A stretch of DNA of 64,000 nt from Mytilus californianus. Lineage: Eukaryota. Under the pieces are notes generated by a model. It was not told where the DNA came from. It worked only from the letters and a program-made list of their open reading frames with translations, and ran no database searches. The position numbers and the translations under genes are program-made. Below are positions 3,228 through 51,463 of this stretch, in pieces; positions within the stretch are counted from its first letter, which is position 1; each line of letters begins with the position of its first letter. The stretch spans positions 68,448,001 to 68,512,000 of the forward strand of contig NW_026262745.1 of assembly GCF_021869535.1 (NCBI RefSeq). Reading direction: 5' to 3'.

Positions 3228-4234
3228 GTATGCAACGCATTGTATACCAAGTGACTATAAGTACAAACGACAATTTAAGCGTTATTTCCATTGATGTCAC
3301 TACAAAAAAGCGTGAAAAGACCAACGTTCTAATATATTTCAAGATGTTTTCCGAAATTCCAAAACAATGGAATGTGTTAAGGATTTTTCTGTCGAACAAA
3401 AGGGCTTATCATGCATTTTGGAATGACATTTCATAGGCAGGTACCAAAACTTTTATGTCTGCTAAGTGTTAGTTAATTATTATTTTTTTTTTTTTATTAT
3501 TTCGGTATGTACGAAACACATCTACCACCTGTATGATTTATGACGTTAATATATTTAAAACAATCACCTGATATACCTGCAGTTTAATACAATCAAGTCA
3601 TTTTATTTTGAAATATATTATATTACTGGCTGGTTAACTTCAATCAAAATCAATAGGCGAGTAAAACTGTATGAATAAAGAAGCATTGTAACGATTTCAT
3701 ATATCAACTGCTTTCAATAATTAATCGTGTCATATAATCAATACAAAGTAAAACGTAAATAGCCTTGTAAAGATTTTATCTAAAACTTTTTCAATATGTA
3801 TTATACAGGGATTTAATTAGAGAAATATTGAAGACATGTTTTTGGTGTTTTTGAAGCAGGTAAAGTAGAAAACTACACATTCAAACAATTCTTTTGGGAT
3901 CATTTTTTTTTAATTCTATAAAGAAATACAAAGCATTGACATAATTTATATGATAAACGTGTCTGGTAAATTTTAAGTTTACATGTTATCAAAACGTATT
4001 ATTTTAAAGTCGAACATCTCTCCATTAGAACGGATGTATGACAATTTTACCTTCTTGATGTCCTGAATGTGCATACGATATTAAATGTGGTGTGAGTTTA
4101 AATTTCCGATGTTGAGGTCTTTATATCCCGAATCTAGCTATAAAACACTAAAATAAGTATCACACATCATTAACTTTTGTAGAATTTCCGAATAGGACTC
4201 TCTTCTTTATTAATTTAATGTCTTTTTTACAGAA

Positions 4235-4258
4235 ATGCTAATTTGTCATGATATCCAG
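4235..4258 (+). CDS. Gene 1 exon 1 (start codon, MLICHDIQ)
   Basis: Acceptor ttttttacag ends at 4232, ATG at 4235, donor CAG|GTGATT at 4259. Phase 0 joins ILLLLVIIDIGMG to give a signal-peptide-like N-terminus. Confidence 0.55.
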
Positions 4259-4706
4259 GTGATTTGCTTTACATGTTTTTGCAAGATCAAGCTACGACGA
4301 TTAAATCATATAAGTTGCGTCACGTGATCAAAATGAAGATTAAACAGTGATCTTATGTACGTTGTTCCATATTTCAGTATTTTCCTGAATTCAATATTTT
4401 ATAGAATATCGGGTCAAGGAAAACATACAGTTTTCGTTTCATGTCTCATTCTGTGATAAAGATAAAGATACAAGTTAATCCAGAGAAGCACTTCGGACGC
4501 TTAAAAATTTCATAAGGTGTGATTTACATTATGGACTATTATATTATTGGGAGTTCAAGGTAATCATTAGAGTAGTTTCTGCTGATATATTTTATATCAA
4601 TTCGATGTGTGCACAAAAATGAGATTTTTAAAGCTTTTAATATTGAAAACACATTTATATGTTGTCGAAGGCCATATAAGGAACTCTTGTCCGTTCATGT
4701 TATTTC

Positions 4707-4742
<36 letters not shown>

Positions 4743-7700: not shown

Positions 7701-10700
7701 TAGATTTTAAATTATAAAACAAAAACATAAAAAGTAATTACTTCACATTCATTAAATGTCTACTTCCATATCTGATATCTCCCATTTGAATTATAGTTAT
7801 CATATTTATTTTGTTCTATTTAACTTGAAATTTCTAGATGACATGTGTCAGGTATTTTCAAAACGCGTTAATGGTAGCTGGTACAATAAACTACTATTAA
7901 TAAGCTTTTTTTTATGTCAGTTTTTATATATTCAATATAGTAGTAACTATCTTATCATTTCCAAGGTACTCGTATGATTTCGAACGAAAACACAACCTGT
8001 CTTATAAAGTTTATGTTTTAGCTAATGACTGATGTTACCGTTCTCAGTGCATCTTAAAAAAATTATAAAGAAACCACCAAACCTAGTAAGTACGACATAT
8101 ACGCGTTTCATCTTCACTAGGATCAACAGTTGCACTCGAATTGACAATTATGGTTAACATCAATTACGAATCAAAGACGAAGAACAATGAAAACCACAAA
8201 AAAAACAAATGCGGTGACAAATCATGTAAAGGTGACCTTGGGTAGAAAACCTTCTAAATGAGAAGGTCCGGTAAGGGCTAGTTTTGACCTAATATTCGAA
8301 GTACATTTAATGAAAGATTTTTGACATTTTTTAAACACTTTAGTGTCTACTTCAGTCGATTCAATTCGTTTATGTAAAAGATTTGAACTGATTTGGTCAT
8401 TAAAGACGCTCGAAATTAAGCTTAGATATGAAAAATCAATAAAAAATGCCATAAAACGTCATTTTTCAGATGGTTTTTGTCTAAAATAGAAATGGCTGCA
8501 ATTGTGTTCAGTATCAAACTTTATATATGTTATGTATTATTACCAAATACAACATATATTTAAATATTAAGACTGACTCAAATGCGGCCACTTCCATTTC
8601 AGACAAAAACCGTCTTAAAATTAGCACAAATGCTAAAATTGTGAAGATTTCAGTAATATTGCACGTATTAATGATGCTATTACCTGATGCATGTGCATTG
8701 TGTTGTCAAAAACAGCCCATATTTATGGAACAGAAGTGCCCTTTTTTCCAATAAATAGCTAAAAGTTAACATTTCAACCAATTTGTAAAAATGCTACATT
8801 TTGGGCCAAAAAAGGGGTCTTACCGGGCCTACTCCTTTAACATTCTTCAACAAAATATTTACAGAAGAAGACTGTACCACTCGTATTTCATGTAACAAAA
8901 AGAAAGACTTTTAAAGTTTCCGAAAGTGTTACATATCTTACGATAAAATGTGGTTGTTTGTTATTGTTGAATGCATAAAGAAATGTTCATCATACATAGA
9001 ATTATTCGAGTGCACCGACGACTTTTGCATTGTTCAAACAAATATGAATGCAGAATTTTGATGATTTAAAATAATTTATAATATTATTGTTGTCGGATGG
9101 TATGTTTGCTCCGTGTTTTTAATTGGGTTTTCAAGTTTCAGACACACAAATCTATCAGTTTTATATAATAAAAAAGAAAACCTATAGTTTTTTGAACCAA
9201 TTTAAAAAAATAATATTTCTGTTGCAAAGAAGTTTTTATCATACCTGTCAACCTCTTACGATGGCAAAACATTTTTAGTGTAATTAACTGGTCATAAGAG
9301 TAAATAAATTCTGTTTTAAGGGATTTAACTAGACAAAAGCCATACTTGGTCCATTAATAACGCATACGAAGACCTTAAAAATAAGTTTAAAGCCTTACAA
9401 CTATTTATAAGAAAAAAAATGTCAAAATGACCACAGGCGCTTGTTGTATAGACCCCCCTTTCTGTGTGTTTAATTTTTATTAATTATTATGAGTAAAATA
9501 TTCAATTTTCTATGTTTGTACCACTTATCTATTACTACTGCGTATGTCTCGTCTATATTTCGAGTGAATTTACCATCACTGTTACAACCCCTTATTTTAC
9601 TATCCATACTTAAAACAACATTTTAGTATGGATATCAAACCATGTCAGAGGAGATGCAATGATTAAGTGCATACTGGATAGGATTAAGTCCAAAGACCCG
9701 TTACTTTAGAAAATTTATGGACCGCAACAAACTTCGTCTGACATGGTTTGTTTGATACACATACTATTGTGTAGATTTTTGAAGTACGTTTCACCGATCT
9801 GAGTATTTCAAATATCATTGATTTCATAAAAATACTCAGAAAGCAAATACTATGATTGATAAGAATAGTATTTAGATGATGATACGTCAACCTTTGTTTT
9901 GCTAAACTCATGTGAGAAAACAGGGTATTTCTGTTCTTCCCAAGCGGCTGGTCTTTGTATTAAAGTGACACCTCACATCCACGTATTCCAACATCAATCC
10001 GAATTCCGACAGCAAAAAATCTTATTCGGCATATCTTGCATAAAATACACCGATTAAATGAATAGGATTTAGTAAAAATCAATAAATATTGGTTTAACAT
10101 TGATAACATAATGCCGCCATGTCGGCCAATCATATCTCAGATTTGTACTGTCACAGAATTTATTGGACGCTATATCGATTATTTTTTAGTACCTATGGTA
10201 CAAAAACAACACACTTATATAAAGGATACGTCTGATCTAATATACAAGTTGGAAAGGATTAAGCCTAATGCAGATTGCTGGCTGTGTAGCTTTGATGTAG
10301 TATCAATGTACACTAATTGCCAGATTAATGAATTATTATCGGCAGTTAGAATTTCGTATGATCAGTTTGATAAATCAGATTACAAAATCAAATGCCCACC
10401 TACGGATGATTTAATCTATCTCCCCAGATCAATTTTAGAGAACAACATTTTTGATTTTAATGGACAGCTTTATAAGCAAAATATAGGCGCCGCGATAGGA
10501 GCAGTGCCAATCCCGGAAATCTGTGATATACTCATGTATAAAATTATGAAAGAAATTCTTTCAAAGTTTGAACATAGAAAAAATATCTTTTTCTATGGAA
10601 GGTATCGTGATGATATTATATTAATATATCACGGCGACTGGAAGGAAATAAAGGATTTGTTAGAGTTAGCAAATAGTCCTCATATGTTCCTGAAATTCAC

Positions 10701-13700
10701 ACTAGAAATTTTATCTAAAAAAATAATATTTCTTGATGTTAATATTTTCAAAAAAAACTAGGTTTTTTTAATGAAAATATCTTGGATGTGAAAACACACT
10801 TTAAACCGACAAATGCCTTCCTTTATCTAGATCGTAAAAGCTGTCACAGTCAACACGTGTTTGCAGGGTTTATCAAGGGCAAAGTTATCAGATACATTAG
10901 AACAACAAATAATGATGTTGATTTACAATATATTTTGTTACAGTTCAGATTGAACTTAATAAATAGAGGATACAAGGAGATTGAAATCGGAAAGTACATA
11001 AATGAGGCATTATAATGTAATAGATCTGATTTAATAAAAAAAAAAAAAAGCCAAAAAACACACAAAGGAAATGCCTTTAGTATTGGCAACGAAATTCAAT
11101 CCATGCATTCATAAATTAAAACAACGCATTAGTAAACATTGGTTTGCAACGAAATATTTTTTTCAGGCAAACCAATAATAGCTTATAAAAAGCATAAAAA
11201 TATAGCAGATCTATTGACAACGACAAAATTAAAATGAATTGATAAGTAAATCCCTGATGATGGCAGGCCTACAATGCTTAAACCCATTCATAAATGTTAT
11301 ACATTTATCATTAGCATATAATACAAAAACCGACGAAACACTAGATTAGTGTCGGATTGATGTAAAGCAATTGCAAGTCTAGTAATACTAGCATCATGTG
11401 ATCAATATTTTGTAATATAATTACAATAAAATACTGATGGTATGTATACGGAGTCTTCCGAATAAGATTTTTTTGCTTTCGGAATTCGGATTGATGTTGG
11501 AATACGTGGATGCTAGGTGTCACTGTTATACAAAATCCTGAGGATGATTAAGGGGGCCCCGTAAATTTTAGGGAATGGAAAGGGAGGTATTCAATTTTTC
11601 AATACTCCAGATGGGGGGGATAATAGGCATCGAAAAAAATTTACAAGATTTAAGCTGTTCTGTATTTCAAACATGAACAAATTGTAGCTAATTTGATGAA
11701 TATACTCTAAATCAGTATCTGATTATTCAACAGAAGTGTCTAACACTTAATTCAGATGTCATATCTATAAATATAGTGTCATAATGTTTGACTTCAAACT
11801 TCATTATAACTTTCCATAAAATATAACACTTATAATATTAAAAGTTGTTTCCTTACATGATTTAATAATCGCAAAACTCATGATTGAGCATAAATTTCGA
11901 TGGTTCAAGATGACATCTAGGAGTTAAATGTGGCATTTTTAATGCGTCTTAACGTGAATAATTTTCCTTTATGAACTCAGGGTATTGTGTCAGGCCACCC
12001 ACTCCCAACGCTTCCCCTTACAATAAAAAAATGTTTTTTGGAGGAAAGACATACATTTTTTCTATAGTTAACTTCAATATCTATGCTATCATCCTTTTCT
12101 TACCCTTAAAACTCATTAAGACCCCTTTTGGAACCCCAATTTTTAAAGCAGAGTCTTGGATATTGAGTGCATCATTTTTTCTTTTGTAGAAAACATTGAA
12201 TTATTAAAGTGAGGAGTTAGATACAGATACAGGTAATATCTTCTTTAACCTACATGGAGACGATGCGAATTACTATACTTCAACCAGCGTTTTTATGTTA
12301 GATTTATACATTACTATGTATAAAACAGCAGCTCCCGTTTCGTACGATTCGTCAAGTTACGCTTTCGTAAGTTCGTTCGTCAATATCCTGGTCATCTCTA
12401 TTACGCGTATGTTGAAATTGTATTTATTTAAATTATCTATTTTTTTAGATATTACTGTTGTTAGTGATCATTGATATTGGAATGGGAATACAATGTCCGG
12501 ATTCATCGCAATGGAAATTGAGGACAAAAGGAATTTGCAACACGGTAGAGCCGTGGTATTATTGTTTATTTGATGAAAATTCTTTGAAGTATAAAGAGTT
12601 CTGCAGAAACAAACAAGATTTTCATAAGCCAGGTATTGTGATTCCGTGTGTATGTGGTTTCTTTTTATTCATATATTAGTCTGTGTCTGCGATAATTTAC
12701 ATGTTATATTTATCTATATTATATTTAGTATCTTTTGACAACATTCTATTCAAATGATAATTACTTTTTAAAAAGTTCTCCCTTTAAAAGAATGTCACAA
12801 GGCCGTTAATTTAATATAATTAAATCAAGGATGTTCGCTGCTTTGTTTCCAAATAATAAGCTTTTGAAAATTCTATTAGAAATTGATAGTCTATAAATAA
12901 CGGAACAAAAAAAGAAGATAAAATTGAATGGTCCGTATCTTTGTTTTTGAGACATACATGTAAGCTTTGGAAAATTGTGCGGGAAATGATTCTTTCTAGA
13001 TTCTATAGTATATTGCACACCCTTTTTCTATCAAAAACCATGACAAAATAACAAGAATATTTTCGATTTTTACTAATGCCTATATGAAATAAAATTATGA
13101 AACGAAAAGTAGGGGTTAGCGGGCAAAACGTTTTAATGGCACTACATGGTAAATTCAGAGGATTCTGAAATATTACAAAAAGTAAAAAACAAGACAGCCG
13201 AACATCCTTAAAAAAATAAAAACAACGTTATAAATTTATTGCATCCGAAGCGTTTTTCTGGATTTACCTTCATCAGGAACGCTGATCCATCTAAGGTCAA
13301 CTTTGCCTGAGGGAGTTAAAAACCTTATTTTCTTTATAATTTCAACATTTATCAACGGACAACTTTAAAAAGGTTTGTATTAAATCAGGTCAGTACCGAA
13401 TTACCGACTTCTGGGCTGATGATACCCTCGAAGGCCTGCTTGTCCTCAAACAGAGGTATCGGCCCAGTGCTGTAAAAAAAGAAACAACACGTTATACATT
13501 CCATGCGTCCGAAGTGCTTTTCTAGATTTACTTTCATCAAGAACGCTTACCAGGCCGAAAATTAGAAAGCCAAGGATGTTTTAGAATCGAAATAGTTGAA
13601 GAGCTATATGATCAAACAGGACCTACAAAGATATCCAAATTTATCTAATGTCAATATTGCCTGAAGGAGTTGAAACCTTAGTTTTTGCATAACTTCAAAA

Positions 13701-19700: not shown

Positions 19701-22700
19701 ATTGAAACCAAAATCCTCTTGAACAAAATTGCCAAAATCCATTGTGATCGTTTTATCTTATGAGGGAAAATAAAAATTTGGAAAATACAATATTTCCACG
19801 ATTCGGATCCTATTATATATAGATGTATTCGTATACTAGCATCTAAAGATACATACTAATTATTTGCAGATTATGAATGCGTAGAAACAGATCATCTGAT
19901 TGGTGGTTTCGCCTGTCCCGTAATAAGGAAGCAAAGGTAAATTAACGTGACTGTTAACAACAAATTTGAACATATTTGAACATTAAACTTCTACACATAA
20001 CTAATATTATATTGTTATGATTATATGAAGACAATAATATTTGTTCCAAAACAAGTATATTTCTAAACTTCAAATGTTGATAAAAAAAACATGGTTACAT
20101 GTAGTCCGCTGTTTACGATTCAAACCAGGGTTTTCGGTGTTCAAAACTATATTGACCCCGTCGCATGAGTTTCCCTGGTTTACTCTTATACCTCTCATTC
20201 AGTATAATTATAATTGAAACACTTTATCATTTAAAACTTCATTATTGGTATATAATTTTCTTTTTGTTTTGCAGGCTACCTGATATTTCTTTAAAGACTG
20301 AAAATGATATTACAAAAGTTGTGCACCGAGGTCAGTTAGCAAATACACGTTGTCTATATTTTCATTTTTTCCCTTCTTTAAGCTTTTGAATAGTGTTCAT
20401 GTGGTGTTAAAGATTCATAGAACAGGCATATACACTGGATTTGCATACGACTAGAGTGTTTTCATCAATGTTGATCGCTTTAATACGTGCATTAATCATA
20501 ATACCAGGCAAAAAAATCACGGACTGTTAGCATTATAAAAATAAGAAGATATAGTATAATTGCCAAAGAGACAAGTCCTCACCAGACATTGGGGTGTATG
20601 TAGATGAATAATTAATTGAAAGTACTAACACGTGCATATTGTTAAGCTAACACATGCATATTGTTCGTTTTGTTCCTCTTTTTTTTAAATCTCAAAATCT
20701 CAAAAGTATTATGGCGTTAATATTCATGGACTCTAAAAAGGAAAATTTTCAGTTAATTTTAATAATAAAAGAATTCGCTAACGCAAGTAAACATCGTTAT
20801 CATATATACTCTTCACTTGAAATTCCATATTTTTTTGACATAATAATTGAAAATGGGCCGATAATATAAAAGAATACGCATACAGAAAGGACACCGCCAA
20901 ATCGTTTACATTAAGATTAAAATTGTTTGGACGTGCAGCATTCAAAGGAAAGTCGTTTCCAATACCAAAATGTAACATAAAAATGAAAATTTAATTTCAG
21001 TGATGATTTTCATTGATTTATTAATATTAAAAACTTTTAATTTCTGTTCAAAACATTGAACATGTTTAATCACAATGTGTATGTTTCAGTTGCATTCTTT
21101 GAAGATGATATTAAAAAATGAGATTAACATAATATTGAATTATTGCTACTATTTTGTGTGAACATATTTTAGTCAGAAATTATGTGCAAAAGAATCGGAC
21201 GAAAGTTTTGCAACTTACAAAGGACTTGTTCAGTTATTAAACGCATAAAAATACACACGCATCAGCAATAGAAATATAAAGAAATCTTCTAAATGTAAGA
21301 ACAAACAAAATCAATTGTATGAACTAAAAATGAAGTGAATAATCATACCGAATGATTGAGTTGTCTACTGAAGTATATTTCAGAAAAAAAAAAGAAAAAT
21401 GGCAATCAAAGTATCAAAAAATCAAACAGCAAAGCAAAAAAAAACAACAAGGAAACACAAGGATATTTACCATGGCCTCACACTGTACGAACAAAAATTG
21501 AATTCAAAAGATTGGTAACTGCACATACGTGTCATGTCTACATCATGATTGTCAATAGACATGTATAGTTTAAAATGTTTAAGGGTGCACCTTTCCTATG
21601 CAGAACGGTTGGTACGAAACATCTGTATATGATAAAAAAAAAAGATACATATCATGAGTGCTAAAACGACTGACATATCGATCTGTTTATTCTTCTAGAA
21701 GCATAAAGTTATATTCAGTTTCAGTTTACTGTGTATTGCTCCATGCTTAGTTTTCTGGATCTATTGTCTGCTTTTTAAAAATTTAGATTTTTCACATATT
21801 GAATGCTAGCAAAATCATGTCATGTTCTGTTGGTTAAACTTGTTTTTATGCCATGATTTATATCATTTTGCCTTTTCAGGAACTATACGTATACCAGAAA
21901 GAAAGAACATAGTTTTTTGTATTCCTTATTTGTAAGTAAAACCCGTTAGTGTTCCAATATTCAGTTTGATCAAATTTAAACGTACACATGTATTGATAAA
22001 AAAGATCGGTTGACATAATCGTATCTCAGCTATTCTGGGACGTATTCACAATGATGTTCTTTGGTGAATTGAGAAAAATAGAATATTAATATGTTCAATA
22101 AACTTTAAGTATAGATAATTTTGGCTTATTTTAATATCAAACTGTCAAGCCATTGAGTAAATACTTCAAATCAAAGACGTCATCATTCAATGTGACCGCC
22201 ACTACATTAACATGTTGACCAACGTAGACATGTTTTTCCGTTTTTTTAGGTACGACTATTTAAAAAATGTAACTTTAAAATTAAATTAATATTTGATTAT
22301 TTTTGTTCATATCAGCTCAGATACACGTATTTGTCTTAAATAAACGCAATTCGAATCTAAACTTTGATTGAATTATCACAACTTGTATTGTCATTGGCAT
22401 TGTAGCACATTTCATTTCGTTTAAACTCTAGACACATATTGATGAAGTCAGAAAAATATCCAACTGTCAGCGAACGCATGATTATACAAAAGTGTAGACA
22501 GTCCATCAAAGAATCGAACACAAAAATAAAACGGAACTAAGCGTTTTAAATCTTATCAATTCGTTAAATAATTTGAAATAAATAATTATATGACACTGTC
22601 ATGTATGTGTCACAAGAATACAGGAAGCGGTAGCAAAAGAGGAAACAGCATTTATATGGATTTATGGTCCCACTTTAAGAAAATTGCAGCCGTAATGCCT

Positions 22701-25700
22701 GAACACGCTATTAAGTTGATACAAGACTTTTAGTTATCAATTTTAAATGATTTAAGTATGAAATGAAAAAGAACATCAACAGGGATACCATAGATACGTG
22801 ATTTCAATAATAATGAGTTCGTTGTTGGACTCCTTCATCTTTTTAGGATATCCTTAAAAAGTAATGCCCTGGAAAAATGTTGCTTCCATTTGTATAGAGA
22901 TGTTTTATATATTGATATAACAGATAAGAGATTTGTGTTTTCGTTATAACATCAGTGTTAAAGAGTGAAAAAAGATATCAAAGGGACATTCAAACTCATT
23001 AACCGAAACTTACCGAAAATTCAATGGCATCAAAATGAAAAACGATCAAAAGTCAAACAACAGTATACAAAACACAACATAGAAATCCAAAGACTGAGCG
23101 ACACAAATCCAAGCAAACATTGGGGTTAAATTAGTTATTAAATGCTTTTCAGGTAAATAGTGCTTACTATGATAGTTAACACCATTGCACATTGTTTGTT
23201 AAAATATTACTGTTAATGACTTCAAAATATAATGTGTATGGGACCAATACTTATTGCATATCAATGTACGATCAAAACAAACTCTTGTAACACCTATCTG
23301 AGGGATCCATTGAAGCTCTATTAGAAGGCTACCTTTCTGCCTCTAAGAAACACATCCTTATTTTGTAGTGGCATTCCAAAAATCCTGTTCTTGTGTCATG
23401 TCAATGTTCATTGCAGAACCTATCTACTGTATTAATTGTTTCAATAATCCCGTTCTAAATATTTGCCACGTTCAGCAAGCAACACTTATCAATCAATTAA
23501 AATGATTAATATATTTGTCTAGAATGTGTCTGATTAATAATTGATCAAAGCGTTATCAGTGGTTTAGGATATTAAAAATGAAAATTCTAATGCAATTATT
23601 TTTATCAATGGTTCTGATTGGATGACGGTACGCGTAAAATTCTCTATCTCCCTGTCTGTAACTAAGGAATCCGACATTTTGAATTCCGGAATGTGTTGTC
23701 ATGTATTTTCTCCAATAATAACCGGTAGCTTTACGGTCGGAAATATCCATTTACCTGTCTCCGCTATGCCTCGCCAGGTAAACTCAATTTGCGATAGTAA
23801 AACTACCAATGGATGTCCGCAAAGCTTCAAATACAATGCAGTTATCTGTAAATTATTCTTGATTAATTTCAAATTACGTTTATGTAGTAATGAGTTCAAA
23901 TGAAATAATACATTTTGTCTATCTTGCCAGTATAGATCTTTACTTGGAAACTTATTTTAATGACCATTTATTAATAGTGGCGTTCATTTCGCTGAACTAG
24001 TATACATTAGTGTTGAGGGGCCAATTTACGCCTGCCTCTTGGTGAGGGATATTCTCGTTACGTTGGCCACCCATTGTTGGCTTTAAGCTGTTTTCTACTC
24101 TTTTGTCGGGTTGTTGTCCCTTTGAAACATTCCCCGTTTTCATTCTTTATAATATCAATGAAAAAAATTAAACAAATGAAACAAATATAAAAAAAATTGC
24201 ACCTCTTGTTCTTCGTATAAATGGATTTACTTTCACCCTCAGATTCACTGAAACAGTTCCTTTATTACTAATGAAAAAGTAAAATAACAAAAATACCGAA
24301 CTCCAAGGGGTTAAAACGGAAAGTTCTTTATAAAATGGCAATATCAAAAGCTCAAACACATCTGACGAATGGAAAACAACTGTCATATTCATGACTTGGT
24401 ACAGGCATTTCCTTATGTAGAAAATGGTGGATTAAACCTGATTTTATAGCTAGCTAAACCTCTCACTTTTATGACAGTCGCATAGAATTCCATTATATTG
24501 ACAACAATGTGTGAGCAAAACAAACAGATATAATAGGTGAAACGTCAAAACTTGCGCTACAGCAGTCAACATTGTAATATAATTTTAATCACTATAAAAA
24601 CACATATCTATTTCAACAAAGAAACCCAAAATTGCAAATAGACAAAGTACATAAGCAAACATGAAACACAAGAACTGAAAATTTACCATAGCACAATAAC
24701 ACAATGGCGAGATGTATAAGTACTGATCCACGTCATAATTATGTAACCAAAAATGGATAAATTGTAAGGTTAAAAATATCCATGGACAAATTGAATGAAT
24801 TTACAATTATATTATATGAGTGGTCCCTATGCTTTGTTTTTAACCATAAAAACACAGAAAATATTGTAAAGAAATGTCAAAAACCAATTTCTAAATACAT
24901 TTAATATTTTTTTTCATGTTAATAACATGTAATTTTTTTTTATTTCAGTTACAATAGTCGTGACTATAATTTTGATGTTTTGCGTTCAAATCGTTGGTTA
25001 TTGTAGTAAGTTTTCATTTTATTTCATTATCTAAATGGCCATCTGTTTCAATTGAAAAAAAAAGTCATATTGGCTGAGGTTTACATATATACATGTTGAC
25101 ATTTGATCGACTTAATTTTTACTCCATATCAAACTCTTTATCTAGGCGAAATATAATTTTGAATAGTTAACGACAACCCTCGTCGAATACTTATTCATGT
25201 TATTTGAATCTATTGCATTTCCAAAAGTCTGTTTTATTAACCAATTTACAACATGAAATGGAACTTCATACTAAGCATTATTAGTTATCCGAATTTGATA
25301 ACTTTGAACTCAATTTGAAAATACTAATAAAGAAAAAAACATAAACTTAAAAAAGATAAATTTTGTTAAATGAGTATCCGTCCATGGTTATGTGTGCATC
25401 AAGCGCCTGAGAATCCAGACTCATCAAAATGTCAGGATAGAACACAATAAATAAATTCACAGATCAGACGATTTTATATTCTCTATTTTAGGATATATGA
25501 CACCACAAATATGTGTCCTTTGAGTTTAGACACCAGTACGTCATGTCGTATCAGTCAATTATGTCTTGACGCTAAAAAGTATTAATTTATTTGCTTCTTC
25601 TATAACTAAAATCAGTGACATAGTATTGTTGGTGGAGGAATATGGACTCTGCATTCATAGTTGGCTGTGCAAGATAACATATATTTGGATTTACTGAAGT

Positions 25701-28700
25701 CGACCTTAAACAGTGACATGGAATGATATTTTATAGCCAGATTTTGTATTTTCAGAACCACCAAAGAACTATGTTCTTCGATATAGTTTGATTAATGTTT
25801 GCATGGACTTATTTCTGTTGTCCACATATATAAAACTTCTTTAGTTCACTGATTTGGATAAAAAGAGAAGACTCTATTTAGTAAATGTCCACAGGGCCTG
25901 CATGTTGAGTCTATATATCCCAGTTGATTTCATAGTTCAGGTTTTGTATTCCTTACAAGAAGTCATGCTTTCGAATTTTGTACAGACGCCCTTATTAATA
26001 ATTTCACACTTATAGAATGTCCGAAAAAAAAATAATCATGGATATGTTCCAATTATTTAAGCCACAATTTCCTTTTTCTCCTCTGAATTTGACATTACCA
26101 AAAGCGACTTATATCCGATTTTTTTTTTATTTACCATGACATGCATGAGCGTCGCTATACACACCAGAGAAGACGCAAATTACGCAAATGGCTATAAGAA
26201 TCGAGTTTGATTAGGTTCTCAATAGATTTGTATTAGACTATTTGAATTTTTATATTTTATTCATTAAATATGTAAGAGGTAACTGTATTATATTTAAAGA
26301 TTTGCGGACGTCCTTTTGCATTTTTACTTTCGCAAATTGAGTTTACCTGGCGACGCGTAGCAAATACAGGTAAATGGATATTTAAGAAAGTAAATCTACC
26401 AATGGACGTCCGAAAAGCGTTAAATACGATACATTTATCTCTATTCTAAAGCAAAATAAACAAATCATTTAATTTAAGTCATAATTTCGGTGTAAAATTC
26501 TCATTTAACGAAATTTCCGCGAAACTAGGTTAGTTCATATGTATTCTTCCTGTATCACACTAACACACCAAGCTTTTCTGCCTTCTTGTACGTCTCAAAA
26601 TGTTATATAACTTGATAAAAAAAAGATTTCAAGTTAGGTCACCAACAGCGAGATAGAGTATTTTACTCTGATTGTCATCCAATCAGAACCGTGTATACAA
26701 AATAATTGCATTCGAATTATTTATAAAAGTCACGTTTGATATTATTGATAACTTTAATTTTTACTTCAAGAATTAATTAATTGAAACTGCAAATTGATAG
26801 TAAGCGCAATTGATATGGTGCGTAGCAAAGCTTATTACAACCACTAATTCCCGTATAACAGGAAATAAATCTTTTGGTGCAAGACAAGGATGTCAGTTGC
26901 AAATTATTTACAGACAATGAGAAAAAAATTCAAACGTTTTTACGATACCAACAATCATTACATTGAGATTTTATATCATATTATTTATTTATACAGAAGC
27001 TAACTTGTATACTGAGTATGTACTAGTATATGAACTGACGAATTTTTAAGAAGTGAACGCTAATGTGATTGCATTTTATAATAACACCTCCATGAGTAAG
27101 GGCAAAAACAGTTCACGGGGACTCGGTGCTTGAGTGGACTAAGTATTCATCTACTGTTTTATTTGTATTTTAAAACTGACGTTGTGCGTTCGAACCTAGC
27201 ACTTGGTAGGTGCGTTCGACTTTATTCTTACAAGTCTTAATTGTCAGTTTTCCTGACGGAGGATGGTGGTTCTCTCTGGGCGCTCCTGTTTTTTTTCTGC
27301 GAATAAAAACTAACGGTATATAACCAATAGTGCCGACAGGTGACGTTATACACAAACAATCATTCCATCAATCAATATTTGAATTACGCAAAGAAGTCAA
27401 GTGTTATTGGAAAATGCTAATTAGTTATATGTAAAACACAAAATTGATGTATCAGAAAACACTCCATAAGCCCGGCAACCAACAACCGACTCATGTGGTA
27501 AAATAGACGTACACACAAAGACAAACAACAATATTAACAAGGAACAAAACATGCTCCAGACAGACCAGGTTGTTTGTTTAACCAATTGATCATGCTCACA
27601 ATTATTAACGTTTTTTCAGCCGACCCGATTTTATTTGTCTGCGTCCTATCATATTCAATTTAAAAAGTAAGACACATCTGTTTAGTTTGAAACATCAATT
27701 TAAAACTTTTTAGGAAAGTTCGTAAGGATGAATAAAATCATCAAAGACCAAGTTGAAGACGGCATCCAGATATATATAAAGGGTATGTTATTGATATATG
27801 ATTATACGTTTTATTGTTATATAACAAGTGCATGCATATCTTATTATCATTATGGTAGTATTATTTTTTATGAAGGAATGAAGGTTATTTAATCATTGTT
27901 GCTTTTCGTTGACTTAAAGACACTTATGTATTGTTCAATATACATTCAGTATAAATACATCCAACAAATGAGAATAAATATGAAAATATAATATTGGTAC
28001 GGGTTTTTTTTCTTAAATATCGCGGTGTATCGTGGTTCAAAATATATTGCTGTTTATTTGTTTTCATTTCATTGCTGTTTAAGTCTGTATAACTTCAAAA
28101 CAATGGTATAGTGCACTTTTTTATTGCTTCTTTATACCAAATATGACATACCTAATAGAACAACCCGTAATCGGATGGATATTAAAGCGAAAACATTTCA
28201 ACGCGTATAAAAATGATAAATTGAAAAAAATACAGGGTTAGGGGGTGCCCGCCAACATGTTTACTAATAACCTTGCCACATTCTGTATGTGCCTGTTTCA
28301 AGTCAGGATCCTGTAATTTAGTTGTTGTCGTTTGTTGTTTTATATCAAATTCGTTTTTTGTTCATTGTTTTGTACATAATTCAGGCTGTAACGTTTCTCG
28401 TTGAATTGTTTTAAAGTTATCTTCGGGGCCTTTTATAGCTGACTATGCGGTATGGGTTTTGCTCATTGTTGAAGGCTATACGGTGAGCTATAGTTGTTAA
28501 CTTCTTTGTCATTTGCTTTCGGTGGAGAGTTGTCTCATTGGCAATCATACCACGTCTTCTTATGTTTATATTTGATACAATTCGGAAGTTGCACAACCTT
28601 AATTTTTAGCAGAATCAGATAATTTCAACTTTCATACAAAAAACTGTTGTATCAAAATATCGTGACTGGATATGTGTCAGGTATGTATTGGAATAATTTG

Positions 28701-31700
28701 TTTTCTATATAAATGATTGTAAAGATAGACGTTTTTTTTTTTTCAATATGTTAAACAAAGTGTCAATTTTAAAGTACAATTGAATATTTTTCTGATTTTT
28801 TGTCAACAGAATATATGCAAAGACAACACACTGAGGACCTTTTACCTCCTGAATTAAAAGGTATATTCTACATTCACAAAATAACAAAAATTAAAATCGT
28901 CATGACCAAAACGGACATTGATAAATATTATAAAACATTGTACACAAAAGACTGTGGATTCATTATTATTCGTGGAATACCAATGTTCGTGGATTGATGA
29001 AAAATTGAATTTTCGTTGATTTTTGATTTCATGGTTTTGCCACATTCTGCATACAAGCCTATAGAAAATTTGCACGAAAATAAATGTATTCACAGTATCA
29101 GATATAAACATGATATAGAATAAGTAACAATATCAAATTACTGTTCATTTGCTGTATATCATGTATATAGGATTTCAAGTTAATGTTACTGTCATAATGT
29201 CAAATTCATGTACTAAACTATTTTTCATCACTTTAACAAGTTAATTTAACAAAAAAAACATAGTTTATCTATTATTAAAGTTCTCATCGAATGCAAATGT
29301 AGTAATCGACACAAACATCTGTTTATTCAAATATTCATACAGACAAACTATGAATGGGACTCATTCCTGAAATGTGTCACTGAAATAAGAATACACGTTA
29401 ACATATTTAACGATAACTTCATTATGATACGTTTTATTCAAACTTCACACACAGTTACTAGTAATTATTTTTAACTGTTTAAAACACCACTGACAAAACT
29501 GATATTTCTCGGCATACCTGTCTGTGTCACGAATTTCTACGATTTTATTTCTCCAATCTCGGAATGGCAAACATAAATTATTCGTTTAATGGAAATCATG
29601 GAATTTTCAAATTCGTCTAAGTTCTCATGTCCTTCTATTTTTTTTTTTTCATTTGTCACTGTAGTCAAATTCTGTACGGTTGAAAAAAAAAAACCTTCTT
29701 ATCATGTGACAAATAGCATGGATTTTTACCAGTTTTGATAGATTTCTGTGGTGCCTTTTTTATCAAATCATCTGTAAATTTTACACTTTTTCCCTCTTTA
29801 ATTTTTACAAGACTATTGGTGTGGTACGTGTCTACTGTCTAACTTCCCTTGTTATTGTTATTAATAGGCACGTTTCCGGTTAAGGTATAACAAGTGTTTG
29901 AACTCTCCGAATTATCCCCTTTCTTTACCTCATCGAATTCAGTATCTGCATCTCCCAGTTATTTTAGCTTTCACTTATACAACGTTCATAATCATATAAT
30001 TGAAATGAGTTAGAATCTTGTCATAGTTTCAATAGCTTATCGTCTTTCCCAGTAATTGATCTTGCTTTATGTTTGACACCTTTGTTTATCTGAGCGGCAT
30101 TGTTTCTTGTCTGGCCAGATCAGTGATTTTAGACTTTTTATTTGTTCAATGTCATGTTGTATAGAATTACAGACAAATAAATAAACTTACTTTTCACAAA
30201 TACATATTAACACCAATTCAGTGGCATACAGTGTTGTTCCTGTCATGTCGTATGACGTGACCACTTTATATAATCGAGAAATGTCCATCAATAACTGTCA
30301 GTATTAATAAAACATAAGTGTTTTAAAATACGATAAGTTCCGTATATTGATTAAATCGTTGTTTCATATACAAATGTACATGTTTCATATACATGTTTCA
30401 TATACATCCATCACATCATTAAAATATTATACGATTTAGATTTGATATACCTTCTTCGACATTTATAAAAAGGAGTATGACAATATATATTTACAGGACC
30501 ACTTTAAAAAAAAAGACGACTGTGTCGTCCATAGAAATTACAATTCATTTGAAAGCATTCCTGAATTTATACATTTTATTACTCATATTCTAACTGCATA
30601 CACCATATAACATACATTATCCTATGTTCATTGGTATCAACATTACTTTATTGAAACGTGTCTATAATTATAAGTTTAATTTGCAAAATTGTTCGTCTTA
30701 AACATGCATAACAGAAAGTATAAATGACTCAATCGAAAATGTTCTAATATGTACAATTCAGAAAAACATGATCAACACATCGACAACTGGAGAAAAGACG
30801 AAGAAAAGTTTATTGAAACAGAAGCAAGTAAAAACGTTGAAGAACGACTCAGGAAAGATAAATGCGTTCTAGTAGTTGGTCGTTCCGGGAATGGTAAATC
30901 GTCAATTATCCGCCATCTAGCACTCAGTATCCAAGCTGAAATGTCTTATCAAATAATGCCAACAGTGAAATCTCCATCCGATATACTTGCATTTAATGAT
31001 CAGAAAAGAAACCAAATATTCATTATAGATGATCTATTGGGAAAAGACATGATTAACGCGCAGGCTGTGGATGAGTGGTCTGCTGAAATAGATAAAGTTT
31101 TAATGTTATTGAATACTGATTCACGATGTAAAACTGAGAAGGAACCAGACGGCAATGTTAAATTTCTGTTTGCTACTGGTGTAGATTTTTATAATGATAG
31201 TATGTTCCATCGCCTTAATCCTATTAAAAAATATGCCTGCGACATTTCCAATTGGCCTTTGAATGACCAAGAAAAGCTTGCAATGATTAGGAATTATATT
31301 TCCCCGGAATCAGAATCAAAACTTACAAAAAAACTTAATTCGGACGAAGCGTATTTTCCATTATTATGTAAAATAGCTGAAGGAAGAACAGCAGAACATA
31401 TTATCAGGTTATTTAGTAACCTTAATGATTTCATTAAGCAAGATCTGTTAGCCTTGAAAGAGACCAATCATCTGAAATTCTGTATTATAACCTTATGCGC
31501 GATATTAAATAACAACTTCGTAGAAGACTTACTTACTGATGGTTACGATTTTGACACCGAAAGAAAGATTTTTGAAAATATTTGCATGGAATTCAATTTA
31601 GGATCTCAAAAAGAACCAGTTAAAAATAAAATAAGAGAACAATTAAAGAACCTTGAAGGTATGTACTTGGCCAAAACAGAGAATTATTATCATTTTATTC

Positions 31701-33304
31701 ACTCTAAAGTGTACCGTACCGCAGTTTTGGTATGTGGCCAGGCTTTTCTACATAATTTTATCAAATTCGGCCGAAGCTCATATATTGCCGAGAGATTTTG
31801 TTTTAAATCGAGTATTACAGACAGAAATCAAGATTCTGTTATTATAATAGATGATGAGAATACCGAAAAAAGATATTTCGACAGATTAATGGCAGATTTA
31901 GAACAAGGGGTTACATACAGTGCATTTCATAACAGTCAACTTCGGCATAAATCATACCGGGATAAATTTTGTTTGTATTGTCAAAACAGAAAACAGAAAG
32001 TTAGTGAACTTTTAAAACATTTTAATGCTTACAGTGAAACTCTAACGAAAAATGTTTCATTTGAAAATAAGGAAGATTATGAAGATTATATTGATTTTAA
32101 AAATCAACATCATTTTTCGTCACACAAAATGCGAAAACCATTAATAGAATCTGCATGGGAAGGATACGCTGACATTATTCAAATGTTATTGGATTCTGGT
32201 TGCAATATAAATGAAATTGACAAATTCGGAAGAACCGCGTTATTTGTTGCGTGTTTTTGCGGAAACGACGATGTAGTTGATGTATTGCTGCGAAATAATG
32301 CCAACCATTCGTTGTACGATCAAATTGGACAGTCTCCATTATTTGTAGCATCCAGAGAAGGATACCATAAAATAGTCCAGGTCCTTATACAGAAGTCCGC
32401 TGATCTGAATCTATGCAACGTAAATGGAGATTCACCATTACTGATAGCCTCATCTGAAGGTCACTTGTGGACTGTTCAAACGTTATTACGGGAAGTACAA
32501 GATTTTTCGAAGTGCAATAATCTAGGACAAACCCCAGTTTTTCTGGCATCTATGAATGGTAGAACCGATGTTTTGAAATACTTATTTTCATCGCATTTCA
32601 GTGAATATATTTCTAAATTTGACAATGAAGGCAGATCCCCTTTGTTTATTGCATGCATGGGAGGACACCATACAGTAGTTCAATTCCTTCTAGAGAATCA
32701 TGCCGATATTTCACAGTGTGATTGGAGTAAACGGTCGCCATTATTTATTGCTTCTGCCGAAGGACATGCTAAAATAGTTAAATTATTAGTTCAGAACAAT
32801 GCTAATATAAATCATTGCGACGAGGAAGGTATGACGCCATTATTTATCGCCGCTGAGAAAGGCCGAACAGAAATTGCCAGTTTTCTTATTGATAGCGGAG
32901 CCAATATAAATATAACGGATAATAAAAGGCGCAGCCCATTTTATGCAGCTTGTAGGAGAGGGTTTATAAGCATAGTTCAGTTGTTGCATGAACATAATGC
33001 CCGCACTTCCGATTGCAATAAATGGGGAGGTTCAGCCTTGTTTGCCGCATGCAGGGAGGGTCATGTCGATATTGCTAAATTTCTTATACATATAGGAGCT
33101 AACATTTCTACACCGGATTGTAACGGTACCACTCCATTGTTAGTAGCATGTGAAAATGGAAATACCGAAATAGTAAAGTTTTTAATAAACAGTGGTGCTA
33201 ATGTTAATGATTGTGACAACGATAAAAAGACTCCTTTAAACGTAGTTATTGCTGGAGGATTTACTGATGTGAGAGAACTTTTGTTGAATAAAGGTGCGCT
33301 TTGA
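4235..33304 (+). CDS. Gene 1 (whole model): predicted type I membrane protein with signal peptide, Cys-rich TNFR-like ectodomain, TM helix, STAND (nSTAND3-like) NTPase and 12 ankyrin repeats. Exons: 4235-4258, 12449-12632, 17234-17536, 19870-19936, 20275-20330, 21880-21931, 24949-25005, 28810-28860, 30762-33304
   Basis: Manual splicing with canonical AG/GT sites. Intron phases are consistent at every junction except exon 6 to exon 7 (1 nt off). With that corrected the CDS is 3336 nt, or 1111 aa. Confidence 0.7.
4711..4739. repeat. (AT)n microsatellite; others at about 38909-38929 and 42555-42590
   Basis: Direct dinucleotide run. Confidence 0.9.
5252..6660. mobile_element. Nested repeat cluster: family B (+, 5252-5830), RT-thumb fragment (+, 5836-6030), PLE-like tail and family A (-, about 6385-6657)
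   Basis: gaatgtg(t/a)caaagagacaacaacccgacc motif, also at 43966-44050, 54827-54977 and 24035-24150. The RT fragment translates as DLHLDIDNDGQLRTKLYD...SAPAYGV. Confidence 0.75.
8258..8836. mobile_element. MITE with TIRs (AGGYCCGGTAAG) and an internal inverted repeat; TTAA at the right flank
   Basis: 8264-8275 is the reverse complement of about 8818-8829; internal inverted repeat at 8468-8500 / 8583-8615. Confidence 0.65.
9964..11524 (+). mobile_element. Degenerate 5'-truncated Penelope-like retroelement (RT and thumb, 3' pLTR with hammerhead, inverted pLTR piece at the 5' end)
   Basis: HKIHR (about 10035), RPIIS, SFDVVSMYTN, YKQNIGAAIG, RYRDD, FLDV, KPTNAFLYL, IAYKKHKNIADLL. Several frameshifts and stops. 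66-bp inverted repeat at 9964-10029 / 11458-11524. Confidence 0.88.
11249..11358 (+). ncRNA. Type I hammerhead ribozyme motif with an enlarged stem II
   Basis: AATCC-CTGATGA (11254-11260)...GAAA (11335-11338), ACACTA-GAT-TAGTGT-C (11353), GGATT. Stems I and III pair fully; the base of stem II is non-canonical. Confidence 0.65.
12449..12632 (+). CDS. Gene 1 exon 2: signal-peptide core and Cys-rich N-terminal domain (ILLLLVIIDIGMGIQCPDSSQWKLR...FCRNKQDFHKP)
   Basis: Acceptor tttttttag| and donor CCAG|gtattg. Open frame matches ORF 12458..12679 and has 4 Cys. Confidence 0.8.
13190..13910 (-). mobile_element. Tandem array of about 2.5 diverged 260-330 bp units, each with a minimal hammerhead-like motif (PLE pLTR / retrozyme-like)
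   Basis: Minus-strand GCGTTC-CTGATGA-AGGTAAATCCA-GAAA-A(A/G)CGCTTC-GGA(C/T)GC variants at 13241-13282, 13505-13546 and 13837-13878. Confidence 0.65.
14243..15290 (-). mobile_element. PLE-type RT thumb fragment plus long 3' tail (family D)
   Basis: Minus frames give IYDKRDDF and SSNIPTSPTYRIYTSQLIRFLRAC. The tail recurs at 24275-24760, 40680-40850 and 63495-63915; the RT part recurs at 41800-42300. Confidence 0.8.
16280..16800 (+). mobile_element. PLE-type RT C-terminus plus 3' tail (family C), ending in a long T-rich run
   Basis: QLIRYSRDCVSYHDFLDRG...[14 protein letters not shown]; local 19-bp duplication at about 16310/16334. Related copies at 18470-18840, 34840-35010, 56895-57410 and 58875-59268. 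Confidence 0.8.
17234..17536 (+). CDS. Gene 1 exon 3: TNFR-like cysteine-rich domain (CTEEGQVDFNNGTTVSDSTCRCD...EDCSCFKKPC)
   Basis: Acceptor ccttgttag| and donor CCTG|gtatgt; 303 nt, phase 1-1; 10 Cys. The C-x-x-x-G-x(5)-GT-x-x-SD-x-x-C pattern resembles TNFR CRDs. Confidence 0.85.
18470..18840 (-). repeat. Family C tail copy (degenerate)
   Basis: Similar to 58875-59250. Confidence 0.65.
19870..19936 (+). CDS. Gene 1 exon 4 (DYECVETDHLIGGFACPVIRKQ)
   Basis: Acceptor tatttgcag| and donor CAAAG|gtaaat; phase 1-2; continues the Cys pattern (TPDYEC). Confidence 0.75.
20275..20330 (+). CDS. Gene 1 exon 5, stalk (RLPDISLKTENDITKVVHR)
   Basis: Strong polypyrimidine acceptor tttttgttttgcag| and donor CGAG|gtcagt; phase 2-1. 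Confidence 0.65.
21880..21931 (+). CDS. Gene 1 exon 6, juxtamembrane/TM start (GTIRIPERKNIVF...); frame conflict with exon 7
   Basis: Acceptor ccttttcag| and donor TTT|gtaagt. The exon is 52 nt, one more than needed to enter the TM frame of exon 7. Confidence 0.55.
24275..24760 (-). repeat. Family D 3'-tail copy in gene 1 intron 6
   Basis: High similarity to 14243-14700. Confidence 0.75.
24949..25005 (+). CDS. Gene 1 exon 7, transmembrane helix (TIVVTIILMFCVQIVGYC)
   Basis: Acceptor ttttttttatttcag| and donor TGTA|gtaagt; 57 nt; the phase-1 frame is strongly hydrophobic. Confidence 0.7.
27116..27330 (+). mobile_element. Degenerate tRNA-derived SINE
   Basis: A-box-like TGCTTGAGTGG, B-box GTTCGAACC, and central GGTGGTTCTCTCTGGGCGCTCCTGTTT resembling conserved metazoan SINE central domains. 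Confidence 0.55.
28245..28568 (-). repeat. Family A repeat copy in gene 1 intron 7
   Basis: Reverse complement of 53775-54100. Confidence 0.75.
28810..28860 (+). CDS. Gene 1 exon 8, cytoplasmic linker (KYMQRQHTEDLLPPELK)
   Basis: Acceptor ttttttgtcaacag| and donor AAAG|gtatat; 51 nt, phase 1-1; joins in frame to EKHDQHIDNW of the last exon. Confidence 0.75.
30762..33304 (+). CDS. Gene 1 terminal exon: STAND P-loop NTPase (nSTAND3-like), helical/winged-helix region and ankyrin repeats
   Basis: 851-aa ORF 30749..33304. Walker A GRSGNGKS (30878-30901), Walker B IFIIDD (about 31015-31033), GxP-like YFPLLC, WHD-like YHFIHS. Acceptor tacaattcag| ends at 30761. Confidence 0.93.
32135..33301 (+). 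repeat. 12 tandem ankyrin repeats (about 33 aa each) at the C-terminus of gene 1
   Basis: Recurrent G-x-[TS]-[PA]-L-[FL]-x-A-x-x-x-G-H...L+..GA.+N motif, from PLIESAWEG to TPLNVVIAGG. Confidence 0.95.
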
Positions 33305-37329: not shown

Positions 37330-38110
37330 ACAAACTTTAAATTCATATAGTATGTGCCAATCTTAAAGGATTTATGAGAGACTGTACAAGCAATACTGTT
37401 AAAAAACAATTAGATATTGTACATATTATATATAATATATATTTGCTTATGAATATCATTAAAATACAGCATAATCAATTATATAAAAAACCATTTCTTC
37501 TAATTAAAATGCTATAGCAGGTTCTGGTAACACTTTCAAAAACTTTATCATTATTGAATAAAAAGATTAACTTTTTATTATCTGATAAAATGTTAAAATC
37601 CACATTGAAATTTGTAACTTCATAAAACAATATATGTCTAAGATCTTCATATAGTGGACATTTCAATAAAACATGTAGTTCATCTTCAATACTATTATTA
37701 CAATAAAAACATGTTCGTTCGTGTATTTTTTTCTTTCATATCTACCCGTTTCTATTCTAAGGGGAGCAACTCCACATCTAAATTTAGCAAAAGAACTCCT
37801 AAATTTAAGAAGTGGCATTTTACATTTTAAGTAAGGTTCAGTACAATAATCATATTTAAATAGCTTATAAGTTCTTAATTTATTACCTTGTGCGTACGCA
37901 GATACTCTATTACTCCAATCTATTTTATATTTATCAAACATTATTGTTTCAAATTGTACAATAATATTCTTATTTAATACATTAGTTTCATAGTTACAAT
38001 AGCTATCAAAATTATGATTTTTAAACATTTCCATAACTCTATGGCTCCAATTCTTAATTCTACCTCTAGCTTTTTTAATTGACCATTTGAAAACCTTAAA
38101 CTTTATTCTA
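37330..38110 (-). mobile_element. 3' end of a non-LTR retrotransposon (LINE) ORF2 with C-terminal Cys/His domain
   Basis: NKLRTYKLFK...EPYL...FAKFRCGVAPLRIETGRY, followed by a frameshifted EDELHVLLKCPLYEDLR. Confidence 0.8.
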
Positions 38111-51048: not shown

Positions 51049-51463
51049 ATGAATGTTGTGCGACTACTCCGACATAAATTATCGATTCCAATATTCTTGT
51101 TATTTCTAGTTGCAGTGCTGTGGTATTCTATTCTCCTGTTTGAAGATATGATAAGACCCCAAAACAGTGACACCGAGAATATGAATCTCTATGACGTAAA
51201 ATTAAGAAAAGCAATTGAAAGTATGGACAGACCGACACGTGAACATATAAAACCTTTGCAACCACCAGATGACCATGAAATACCGCAAGAATCTCTGTAT
51301 TTTATAGATAACGAATTTGAAAAGATAAATGAAAGTATAAATGCTCATAATATTAACTTATATGACAGTAAGCAGGAAGGAAAATACAATGGTGAAAATT
51401 TACACATTAAACCACCGTTGAAGGAGTTTCCAAAAGTTGATATCCTTGTCAAAGAAGAATTAG
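51049..51463 (+). CDS. GALNT: GALNT coding exon 1: cytoplasmic tail, TM anchor and stem
   Basis: [31 protein letters not shown]; acceptor ends at 51038; donor TTAG|gtaatg. Confidence 0.85.

Follow-up and report, generated by a model that had tools for sequence, protein, structure and literature searches.

The window analysed here is a stretch of 64,000 nucleotides from the mussel Mytilus californianus (contig NW_026262745.1 of assembly GCF_021869535.1), which contains no N and has a G+C content of about 32 %. Its forward strand carries the exons of a putative cell-surface receptor, in which a signal peptide, a cysteine-rich ectodomain resembling that of the tumour necrosis factor receptors (TNFRs), a stalk, a transmembrane (TM) helix and a linker precede one large exon for an NTPase of the nSTAND3 clade followed by ankyrin repeats (ANK). 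We consider it probable that this locus derives from a family of putative type I membrane receptors in Mytilus, none of whose exons it has lost, and that the reference haplotype is frameshifted in exon 5 and yields the two separate products annotated by RefSeq. An open reading frame (ORF) of 851 aa at positions 30749-33304 is 100 % identical to the M. californianus RefSeq protein XP_052078386.1 ("ankyrin-1-like isoform X1", 882 aa), whose 90 % cluster also contains isoform X2 (897 aa) and the M. coruscus orthologue CAC5423013.1.

The exons upstream of this ORF were located by tblastn with the N-termini of two family members, P0019 (M. trossulus, 1167 aa) and P0009 (M. coruscus, 1018 aa), which returned the homologous Cys-rich exons 2, 3 and 4 (Table 1). 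Together these three exons hold the 16 Cys and the single NGT sequon that the original prediction, made from the letters of the sequence, had described for the ectodomain, and the start of its NTPase-ANK exon (set by the acceptor at 30760-61), its hydrophobic exon and its two linker exons were likewise recovered. Two parts of that map had to be revised. Exon 1 had been placed at 4235..4258 (+), where eight codons (MLICHDIQ) are followed by GT; no homologue or gene model uses them, and the N-termini of the RefSeq product and of the M. coruscus orthologue (MCLVFLKQ, the counterpart of the window's MFLVFLKQ) place exon 1 at 3836. Moreover, the 56-nt stalk exon, here exon 4b, had been missed. Hydropathy peaks at 2.4 for MFLVFLKQILLLLVIIDIGMG and at 2.4-3.0 for the TM candidates, which are followed by RKFVR, with the helix interrupted in the present assembly. 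In the intron before the STAND exon, tblastn also gave a weak match to the last-Cys exon at 29805-29852 (+) (LQDYWCGTCLLSNFPC, E 0.25), which could be due to chance or be what is left of a duplicated exon.

Table 1. Exons of the receptor-like gene in the window and one repeat-derived fragment (positions are those of the whole stretch).
Feature	Position	Strand	Content and evidence
Exon 1	3836..3859	+	Start codon and MFLVFLKQ, with which the signal peptide begins; donor GTAAAG; identical to the N-terminus of XP_052078391.1 (P0194)
Exon 2	12449..12632	+	Remainder of the signal peptide, ILLLLVIIDIGMG, and N-terminal 4-Cys module; tblastn of P0009, P0194 and P0193
Exon 3	17234..17536	+	Central part of the TNFR-fold Cys-rich ectodomain, including the NGT sequon and 10 Cys; tblastn and profile search
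Exon 4	19870..19936	+	Last Cys pair, DYECVETDHLIGGFACPVIRKQ; ends in phase 2; tblastn
Exon 4b	20275..20330	+	56-nt stalk exon, LPDISLKTENDITKVVHR; included in RefSeq products P0194 and P0041; alignable with the P0014 stalk
Exon 5	21880..21935	+	First half of the TM helix; T6 run at 21913-21918; TAA at 21933-21935 in the homologous frame
TM exon	24949..25005	+	Second half of the helix, TIVVTIILMFCVQIVGYC; entered in phase 1; spliced to RKFVR-MNKII... at 27714
Exon 7	27714..27782	+	Basic juxtamembrane RKFVR and beginning of the charged helical linker
Exon 8	28810..28860	+	Linker, YMQRQHTEDLLPPELK
Exon 9	30762..33304	+	nSTAND3 NTPase (nucleotide-binding, helical and winged-helix domains), about 12 ankyrin repeats, stop codon
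Reverse-transcriptase fragment	10111..10761	+	In intron 1, outside the gene product; weak RVT_1 match, E 3.4e-4

As had been predicted, both nucleotide-binding motifs are intact in the ORF (Walker A, GRSGNGKS; Walker B, IFIIDD), and G45, K46, S47, D90 and D91 are invariant among 29 homologues. The Pfam family nSTAND3 (PF20720) matches residues 21-184 with 72.6 bits against a cut-off of 27.2 (E 3.8e-20), and ankyrin families cover residues 466-851, where the cores are spaced by 33 residues; nine of them meet a strict pattern, and the spacing permits about 12 repeats, the number originally counted. An AlphaFold2 (AF2) model of residues 36-495 of the RefSeq protein reached a mean predicted local distance difference test score (pLDDT) of 82.6, and its Foldseek matches included MalT (E 2.3e-6) and NOD2 (5.6e-6), as well as CED-4, Avs5, NLRC4, NLRP3, Apaf-1 and plant resistosomes, over 380-490 alignment columns and with probability 1.0. 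Among Swiss-Prot entries the model matched TTC41, NPHP3, CED-4, MalT and HET-E. The AAA+ proteins ORC/Cdc6 also match, as expected for a sister group. Model and matches alike support the domain order of Apaf-1, NOD2 and MalT, in which helical and winged-helix domains come after a nucleotide-binding domain (NBD). Only nSTAND3 and ankyrin families were reported by Pfam for the ORF, with no match to NACHT or LRR, nor to a death-fold domain in the tail. Judged by its domain matches, the ORF is thus NLR-like in architecture only, and not a NACHT-LRR protein.

The likeness of the ectodomain to TNFRs, proposed in the original prediction from a cysteine motif, was borne out at the level of the fold and failed at the level of Pfam TNFR_c6 and of PDB sequences. 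An AF2 model built on 59 family members (pLDDT 90.5) was compared with the PDB by Foldseek, and the top 50 matches were all members of the TNFR superfamily (TNFRSF), namely CD40, DcR3, HVEM, 4-1BB, DR5, TNFR1, OX40, RANK and DR6, with E-values from 7e-4 (CD40) to 2e-2 and probabilities of 0.90-1.0. In an exhaustive VIA alignment against 48,161 chains, the top 25 were again all TNFRSF members or viral TNFR homologues (Fas with Z 6.2, HVEM with 6.1, then 4-1BB, TNFR1, DR5, OX40, CrmE, CD27 and TNFR2, and further RANK, OPG, DR6, EDAR, GITR, LTbR and p75), at Z 6.2-3.4, with 79-118 aligned residues and a target TM-score of up to 0.62; the first protein other than a TNFR appeared at Z 3.3. The neighbours of the head in AFDB and Atlas are molluscan and, further off, proteins named "TNFR-Cys", an annotation that one family member also carries in UniProt, and P0019 gave a sub-threshold match to RANK_CRD_2 (E 0.018). 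Several results count against this assignment: the structural match is of moderate size (Z about 6, TM-score 0.3-0.6), Pfam returned no family for the window ectodomain at E<=1, TNFR_c6 was matched by 1 of the 59 family members (E 0.009), and a profile search of the head against PDB sequences found no TNFR. We accept that, as modelled, the ectodomain is a stack of TNFR-type cysteine-rich domains (CRDs) at the level of the fold, which, with scores this moderate, is compatible with both homology and convergence.

Exon 5 breaks the reading frame that should connect this head to the STAND tail. From phase 2 at the end of exon 4 the frame passes to phase 1 through exon 4b, and since exon 5, when spliced at its strong donor GTAAGT at 21932, is 52 nt long (21880-21931; +1), the TM exon is entered in phase 2 instead of 1, whereas the corresponding exon of the paralogue measures 81 nt (0 mod 3). 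With exon 4b included, exon 5 reads TIRIPERKNIVF, which is the RefSeq frame and aligns with TIHIMEKDNTVV... of the intact close paralogue P0014, and is therefore taken as the ancestral frame. Past the T6 run this homologous frame loses its hydrophobicity (CIPYL) and runs into the TAA stop; five T instead of six would yield VFLIF and join the TM exon in phase. The break is located at or just past the T6 run, and exon 5 is one base too long in the reference haplotype. When six splice combinations were tested, two proved to be open. In model F exon 5 is skipped, and a product of 1117 aa results with homologous frames throughout, canonical splice sites and a helix of 19 residues. In model C, also of 1117 aa, exon 4b is skipped and the weaker donor GTAAAA at 21936 is used; this is the only form in which the nine-exon join of the original prediction stays open, and we judge it unlikely, as it reads exon 5 in a frame without homology to the paralogues. 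A full-length product accordingly requires skipping of exon 5, a T5 allele or an error in the assembly. Poly(A) signals 3' of exon 5 occur only at background density and are not decisive.

Comparison with the M. coruscus orthologue gave ratios of non-synonymous to synonymous substitution rates (dN/dS) of 0.14 for exon 2 (dS 0.24), 0.07 for exon 3 (dS 0.22) and 0.28 for the STAND-ANK exon (dS 0.12), with an identity of about 81-82 % in the flanking introns. These values indicate that head and STAND-ANK have both been under purifying selection since the two species separated. Given this constraint on both parts and a TM exon that remains open and hydrophobic, the break would be recent, polymorphic, an assembly error or tolerated. 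At the orthologous locus (CACVKT020009705.1) a Gypsy-type long terminal repeat (LTR) retrotransposon of about 12.7 kb, with capsid, reverse transcriptase, RNase H and integrase, lies in intron 3 (L002 33614-39118 / L005), and the distance from head to STAND is about 45 kb, compared with 13 kb in M. californianus.

An exhaustive profile search with the head returned 389 representatives at the 50 % cluster level (E<=1e-3), and every member looked up by name is from Mytilus. Among the 41 members of at least 360 aa that were scanned with Pfam, nSTAND3 and Ig were each found in 11, ankyrin in six, the DZIP3-type HEPN in four, Roc in four (three of them with COR-A) and AIG1/GIMAP in two; AFDB adds entries in which the head is joined to TIR and to dynamin-N. 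The layout is regular: a CxCD motif near residue 130 is followed, about 90 residues further on, by the TM helix (near 220-250) and then by Walker A (near 280-350), and order and spacing are the same across independent pipelines and species. Intact head-TM-nSTAND3(-ANK) proteins are present in M. trossulus, M. edulis, M. coruscus and M. californianus (RefSeq, ENA), for instance XP_071124951 and XP_071124008 of M. edulis, with ankyrins, and the RefSeq gene LOC127714293 (P0197) of M. californianus itself, while XP_063408958 of M. trossulus is a head-TM-Roc-COR and XP_052078634 of M. californianus a head-TM-AIG1 protein. Uninterrupted ORFs for head-TM-nSTAND3 (P0127, P0047) and head-TM-HEPN (P0146) are found on Logan contigs of 1.6-3.3 kb, and one of 2307 nt (L004) holds a head-TM-nSTAND3 ORF of 673 aa at 232-2253; since the genomic genes have kb-long introns, these contigs probably represent spliced RNA. 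On the strength of the intact proteins in four species and of the uninterrupted Logan ORF, the architecture can be taken as real for the family. The fusion of TNFR-like head, TM, STAND and ANK that was first proposed for the window is therefore supported for the family and, as stated, not supported for the locus itself, where the assembled frame is broken.

The exons of the window fit this family in detail. In the intact M. trossulus gene (L001) the core, last-Cys and stalk exons, an 81-nt exon for the first half of the TM helix, an exon for its second half, linker exons and the STAND exon follow one another; the helix is split in phase 1, as in the window, and the window exons are colinear with these and share their phases. 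Likewise, exons 4, 4b, 5 (N-terminal part), TM, 7 and 8 align in unchanged order with the intact paralogue P0014. Among the 37 closest STAND-ANK paralogues, at least six have a head or a TM segment, one has a CARD (P0034) and one a HEPN domain, and many are annotated as headless. Some gene models of the family are chimeric, with a transposon-like N-terminus in P0014, Ig arrays past the TM helix in P0110 and P0174 and a kinesin domain in P0117. The precomputed Pfam list of the M. trossulus XP protein P0019 also includes PF28177.1, which may be a newly curated family covering the head or the stalk.

RefSeq divides the locus into two genes. LOC127716270, the top match of the exhaustive head search, is modelled as a secreted protein (isoforms X1 of 229 aa and X2 of 210 aa), and the second gene, "ankyrin-1-like", begins in isoform X2 at the ATG 24975, inside the TM exon and in the frame of the TM helix, and in isoform X1 at the ATG 27728, within exon 7. 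This division follows from the homologous frame of exon 5 running into TAA, so that a secreted protein of 229 aa and a separate "ankyrin-1-like" gene are annotated, and the M. coruscus annotation likewise lists head and STAND-ANK as separate genes. Many headless paralogues, P0004, P0010 and P0013 among them, provide a parallel to position 27728, being annotated from a Met at the position of exon 7 (MNKII, MNQII or MEEKI); such starts may reflect either a conserved cytosolic isoform made from an internal start or the same truncation repeated by the annotators.

Separate genes for head and tail, the outcome that the original prediction had set against its fusion, are what RefSeq lists, in computed models and not in cDNAs, and the split may have been forced on them by the frame break. 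The T6 homopolymer could itself stem from an error of assembly or represent only one of the alleles at a polymorphic site. The TM exon is still open, hydrophobic and in the homologous frame, with a conserved YC|RKF junction, an observation in favour of a break that arose recently, is not fixed or does not exist. These points weigh against a haplotype limited to two products and would fit a receptor that is made in full, the extra T being an assembly error or confined to a single haplotype, or exon-5 skipping being dominant, and the two RefSeq genes an artefact of one. In that case T5 would encode NIVFVFLIF and then TIVVTIILMFCVQIVGYC, together a clean helix, about 27 residues long, in agreement with NVWFTVIIVAG / NTVVLLAVLITIGMA of the paralogues; skipping of exon 5 also leaves the 1117-aa ORF open, head and tail are both under purifying selection, and isoform X2 includes the TM exon, so that transcription of the STAND gene extends at least that far upstream. 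Nevertheless, we regard a full-length receptor as an unlikely, if serious, alternative. In a collection of 5.8 billion sequences no protein joins the window head to the window STAND tail at high identity, near-identical matches of the tail being only headless forms of 851-897 aa; the RefSeq isoforms, two for each half, include none that links the two; and the strong acceptor and consensus GTAAGT donor of exon 5 disfavour its skipping.

Two further explanations would deny the locus a receptor ancestry. It is scarcely credible that a secreted Cys-rich protein and a cytosolic STAND-ankyrin protein were always independent neighbours. The separate genes annotated in both RefSeq and M. coruscus, and the many close paralogues annotated without a head, would agree with such an origin, but the DNA between the two genes contains TM-helix and linker exons on the same strand, in the order and phases of the intact fusion genes, the secreted RefSeq model terminates inside the first half of the TM helix, and a head or TM segment is carried by at least six of the paralogues counted above. 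Very improbable, too, is that gene predictors created the head-TM-STAND architecture by merging adjacent genes in repeat-rich mussel genomes: the chimeric models P0014, P0110, P0174 and P0117 document that such errors occur, yet they would hardly produce the same order and spacing in independent pipelines and species, nor the uninterrupted ORFs of P0127, P0047 and P0146 on contigs that appear to be spliced RNA. The reading that we favour thus remains that of a receptor gene with all its exons preserved and a frame broken in the reference haplotype.

In its ancestral layout the gene would have encoded a signal peptide, a TNFR-fold ectodomain (about 170 aa, 16 Cys) on a short stalk, a single TM helix whose halves lie in separate exons, some 60 aa of charged helical linker, the nSTAND3 NTPase and about 12 ankyrin repeats. 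From the reference haplotype the most likely products would be a secreted TNFR-like protein of 229 aa without an anchor, possibly decoy-like, and an N-terminally truncated cytosolic nSTAND3-ANK protein starting at the Met in the TM exon or in exon 7, and the full-length receptor of 1117 aa would arise only by skipping of exon 5, with the frame kept and a helix of 19 residues. In the intact members an oligomeric ligand may cluster the TNFR-like heads, as in TNFR signalling, and thereby bring the juxtamembrane STAND modules together for a nucleotide-dependent oligomerisation, in which the ankyrin array may serve as a platform for downstream partners or as an autoinhibitory lid. Since TNFRs signal by ligand clustering and STAND modules by induced oligomerisation, this outside-in coupling is the simplest reading. 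Against it stands that we know of no ligand of the head, and of no demonstration that clustering activates any nSTAND3 module.

That a single head occurs on RNase, TIR and GTPase tails is consistent with a sensor whose effectors can be exchanged. Extending this thought, we tentatively propose, as a possibility in which we place less than even confidence, that the TNFR-fold ectodomain and its TM segment form a general-purpose surface sensor cassette of Mytilus, exon-shuffled onto at least six intracellular immune classes (nSTAND3-ankyrin, DZIP3-type HEPN RNases, GIMAP/AIG1, Roc-COR, TIR and dynamin-like GTPases). Its STAND members would then be membrane-spanning NLRs in which ligand clustering nucleates the STAND oligomer without a death-fold adaptor, and the window locus would be a natural split allele that releases a soluble decoy and a free cytosolic STAND-ANK protein. 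Presence/absence and allele diversity are known features of mussel immune genes, and a split allele, if true, would add a further layer to both. The family would also illustrate how animals that lack adaptive immunity can vary recognition at the cell surface, namely by combining one head with many effectors through shuffling. For annotation the lesson is that a single-base frame break makes pipelines split a gene and name its tail "ankyrin-1-like", which hides the receptor.

Outside the receptor exons, a 175-aa ORF at 37663-38190 (-), without a Pfam match, has a C-terminus resembling the tail of a LINE reverse transcriptase and appears to be retroelement debris. Further downstream, a gene at 51049-53852 (+) resembles a polypeptide GalNAc-transferase, with a first exon at 51049 for a type II membrane anchor and an exon at 53529-53852 that carries a motif ending in ILADDCSD and matches Glycos_transf_2 (E 9e-8).

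In the current understanding, STAND/NLR proteins are switches that sense within the cytosol, and TNF receptors signal through death-fold or TRAF adaptors; a TNFR-fold head connected by one helix to a STAND NTPase would therefore test whether proximity imposed from outside is by itself enough to fire a STAND oligomer. The head shares with the ectodomains of TNFRSF members (CD40, Fas, HVEM, 4-1BB, TNFR1, DR5) an elongated stack of about three disulfide-rich CRDs, placed between a signal peptide and a single TM helix, and these receptors were its best, and essentially only, structural matches in two independent searches. It differs from them in an extra N-terminal helix and 4-Cys module, and on the cytoplasmic side in a STAND-ankyrin module of 1000 residues in which Pfam detects no death domain. 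With the cytosolic STAND proteins (Apaf-1/CED-4, NOD2/NLRC4, MalT and the bacterial Avs) the tail has in common the P-loop NBD, the helical and winged-helix domains and C-terminal repeats; however, its NTPase belongs to the nSTAND3 clade and not to NACHT or NB-ARC, its repeats are ankyrins and not LRR or WD40, and the place of the N-terminal effector, where the close paralogue P0034 has a CARD, is filled by an extracellular domain and a TM helix. KIDINS220/ARMS is likewise an animal membrane protein uniting ankyrin repeats and a P-loop NTPase, but it lacks a Cys-rich ectodomain, carries its ankyrins at the N-terminus and has an NTPase of the KAP family with inserted TM helices.

The closest described system is found in oysters. 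The original prediction knew of no functional description of such an architecture, and our literature search likewise yielded no paper on the Mytilus head family, nor is a head of this type described in the pearl-oyster HEPN/NACHT paper; analogous receptors of oysters have, however, been reported by Kaur, Iyer, Burroughs & Aravind (2021, eLife, PMC8195603). These authors describe about 50 proteins of C. virginica in which a constant Cys-rich ectodomain, a TM helix and a dyad of DED and NCOA6-type TRADD-N precede a variable part consisting of STAND NTPases, HEPN RNases, AIG GTPases, ankyrins, Death-like domains and others, and they propose receptor-like sensing (PMC8195603). Both families are lineage-specific expansions of bivalves, and the Mytilus head follows the same combinatorial logic. 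In the oyster proteins the DED-TRADD-N dyad stands directly after the TM helix, whereas in Mytilus the linker from TM to NTPase has only about 60 residues (about 75 from TM to Walker A), which points to the lack of the dyad. In line with this, Pfam found neither DED nor TRADD-N in the window ORF, in P0019 or in ten proteins scanned singly, and both are absent from the 25 most frequent Pfam families of the 41 long members. The Mytilus family thus shares the logic of the oyster receptors and is distinct from them in its short, dyad-free linker and in a head that can be assigned to the TNFR fold, and the copy in the window is a frameshifted example of it.

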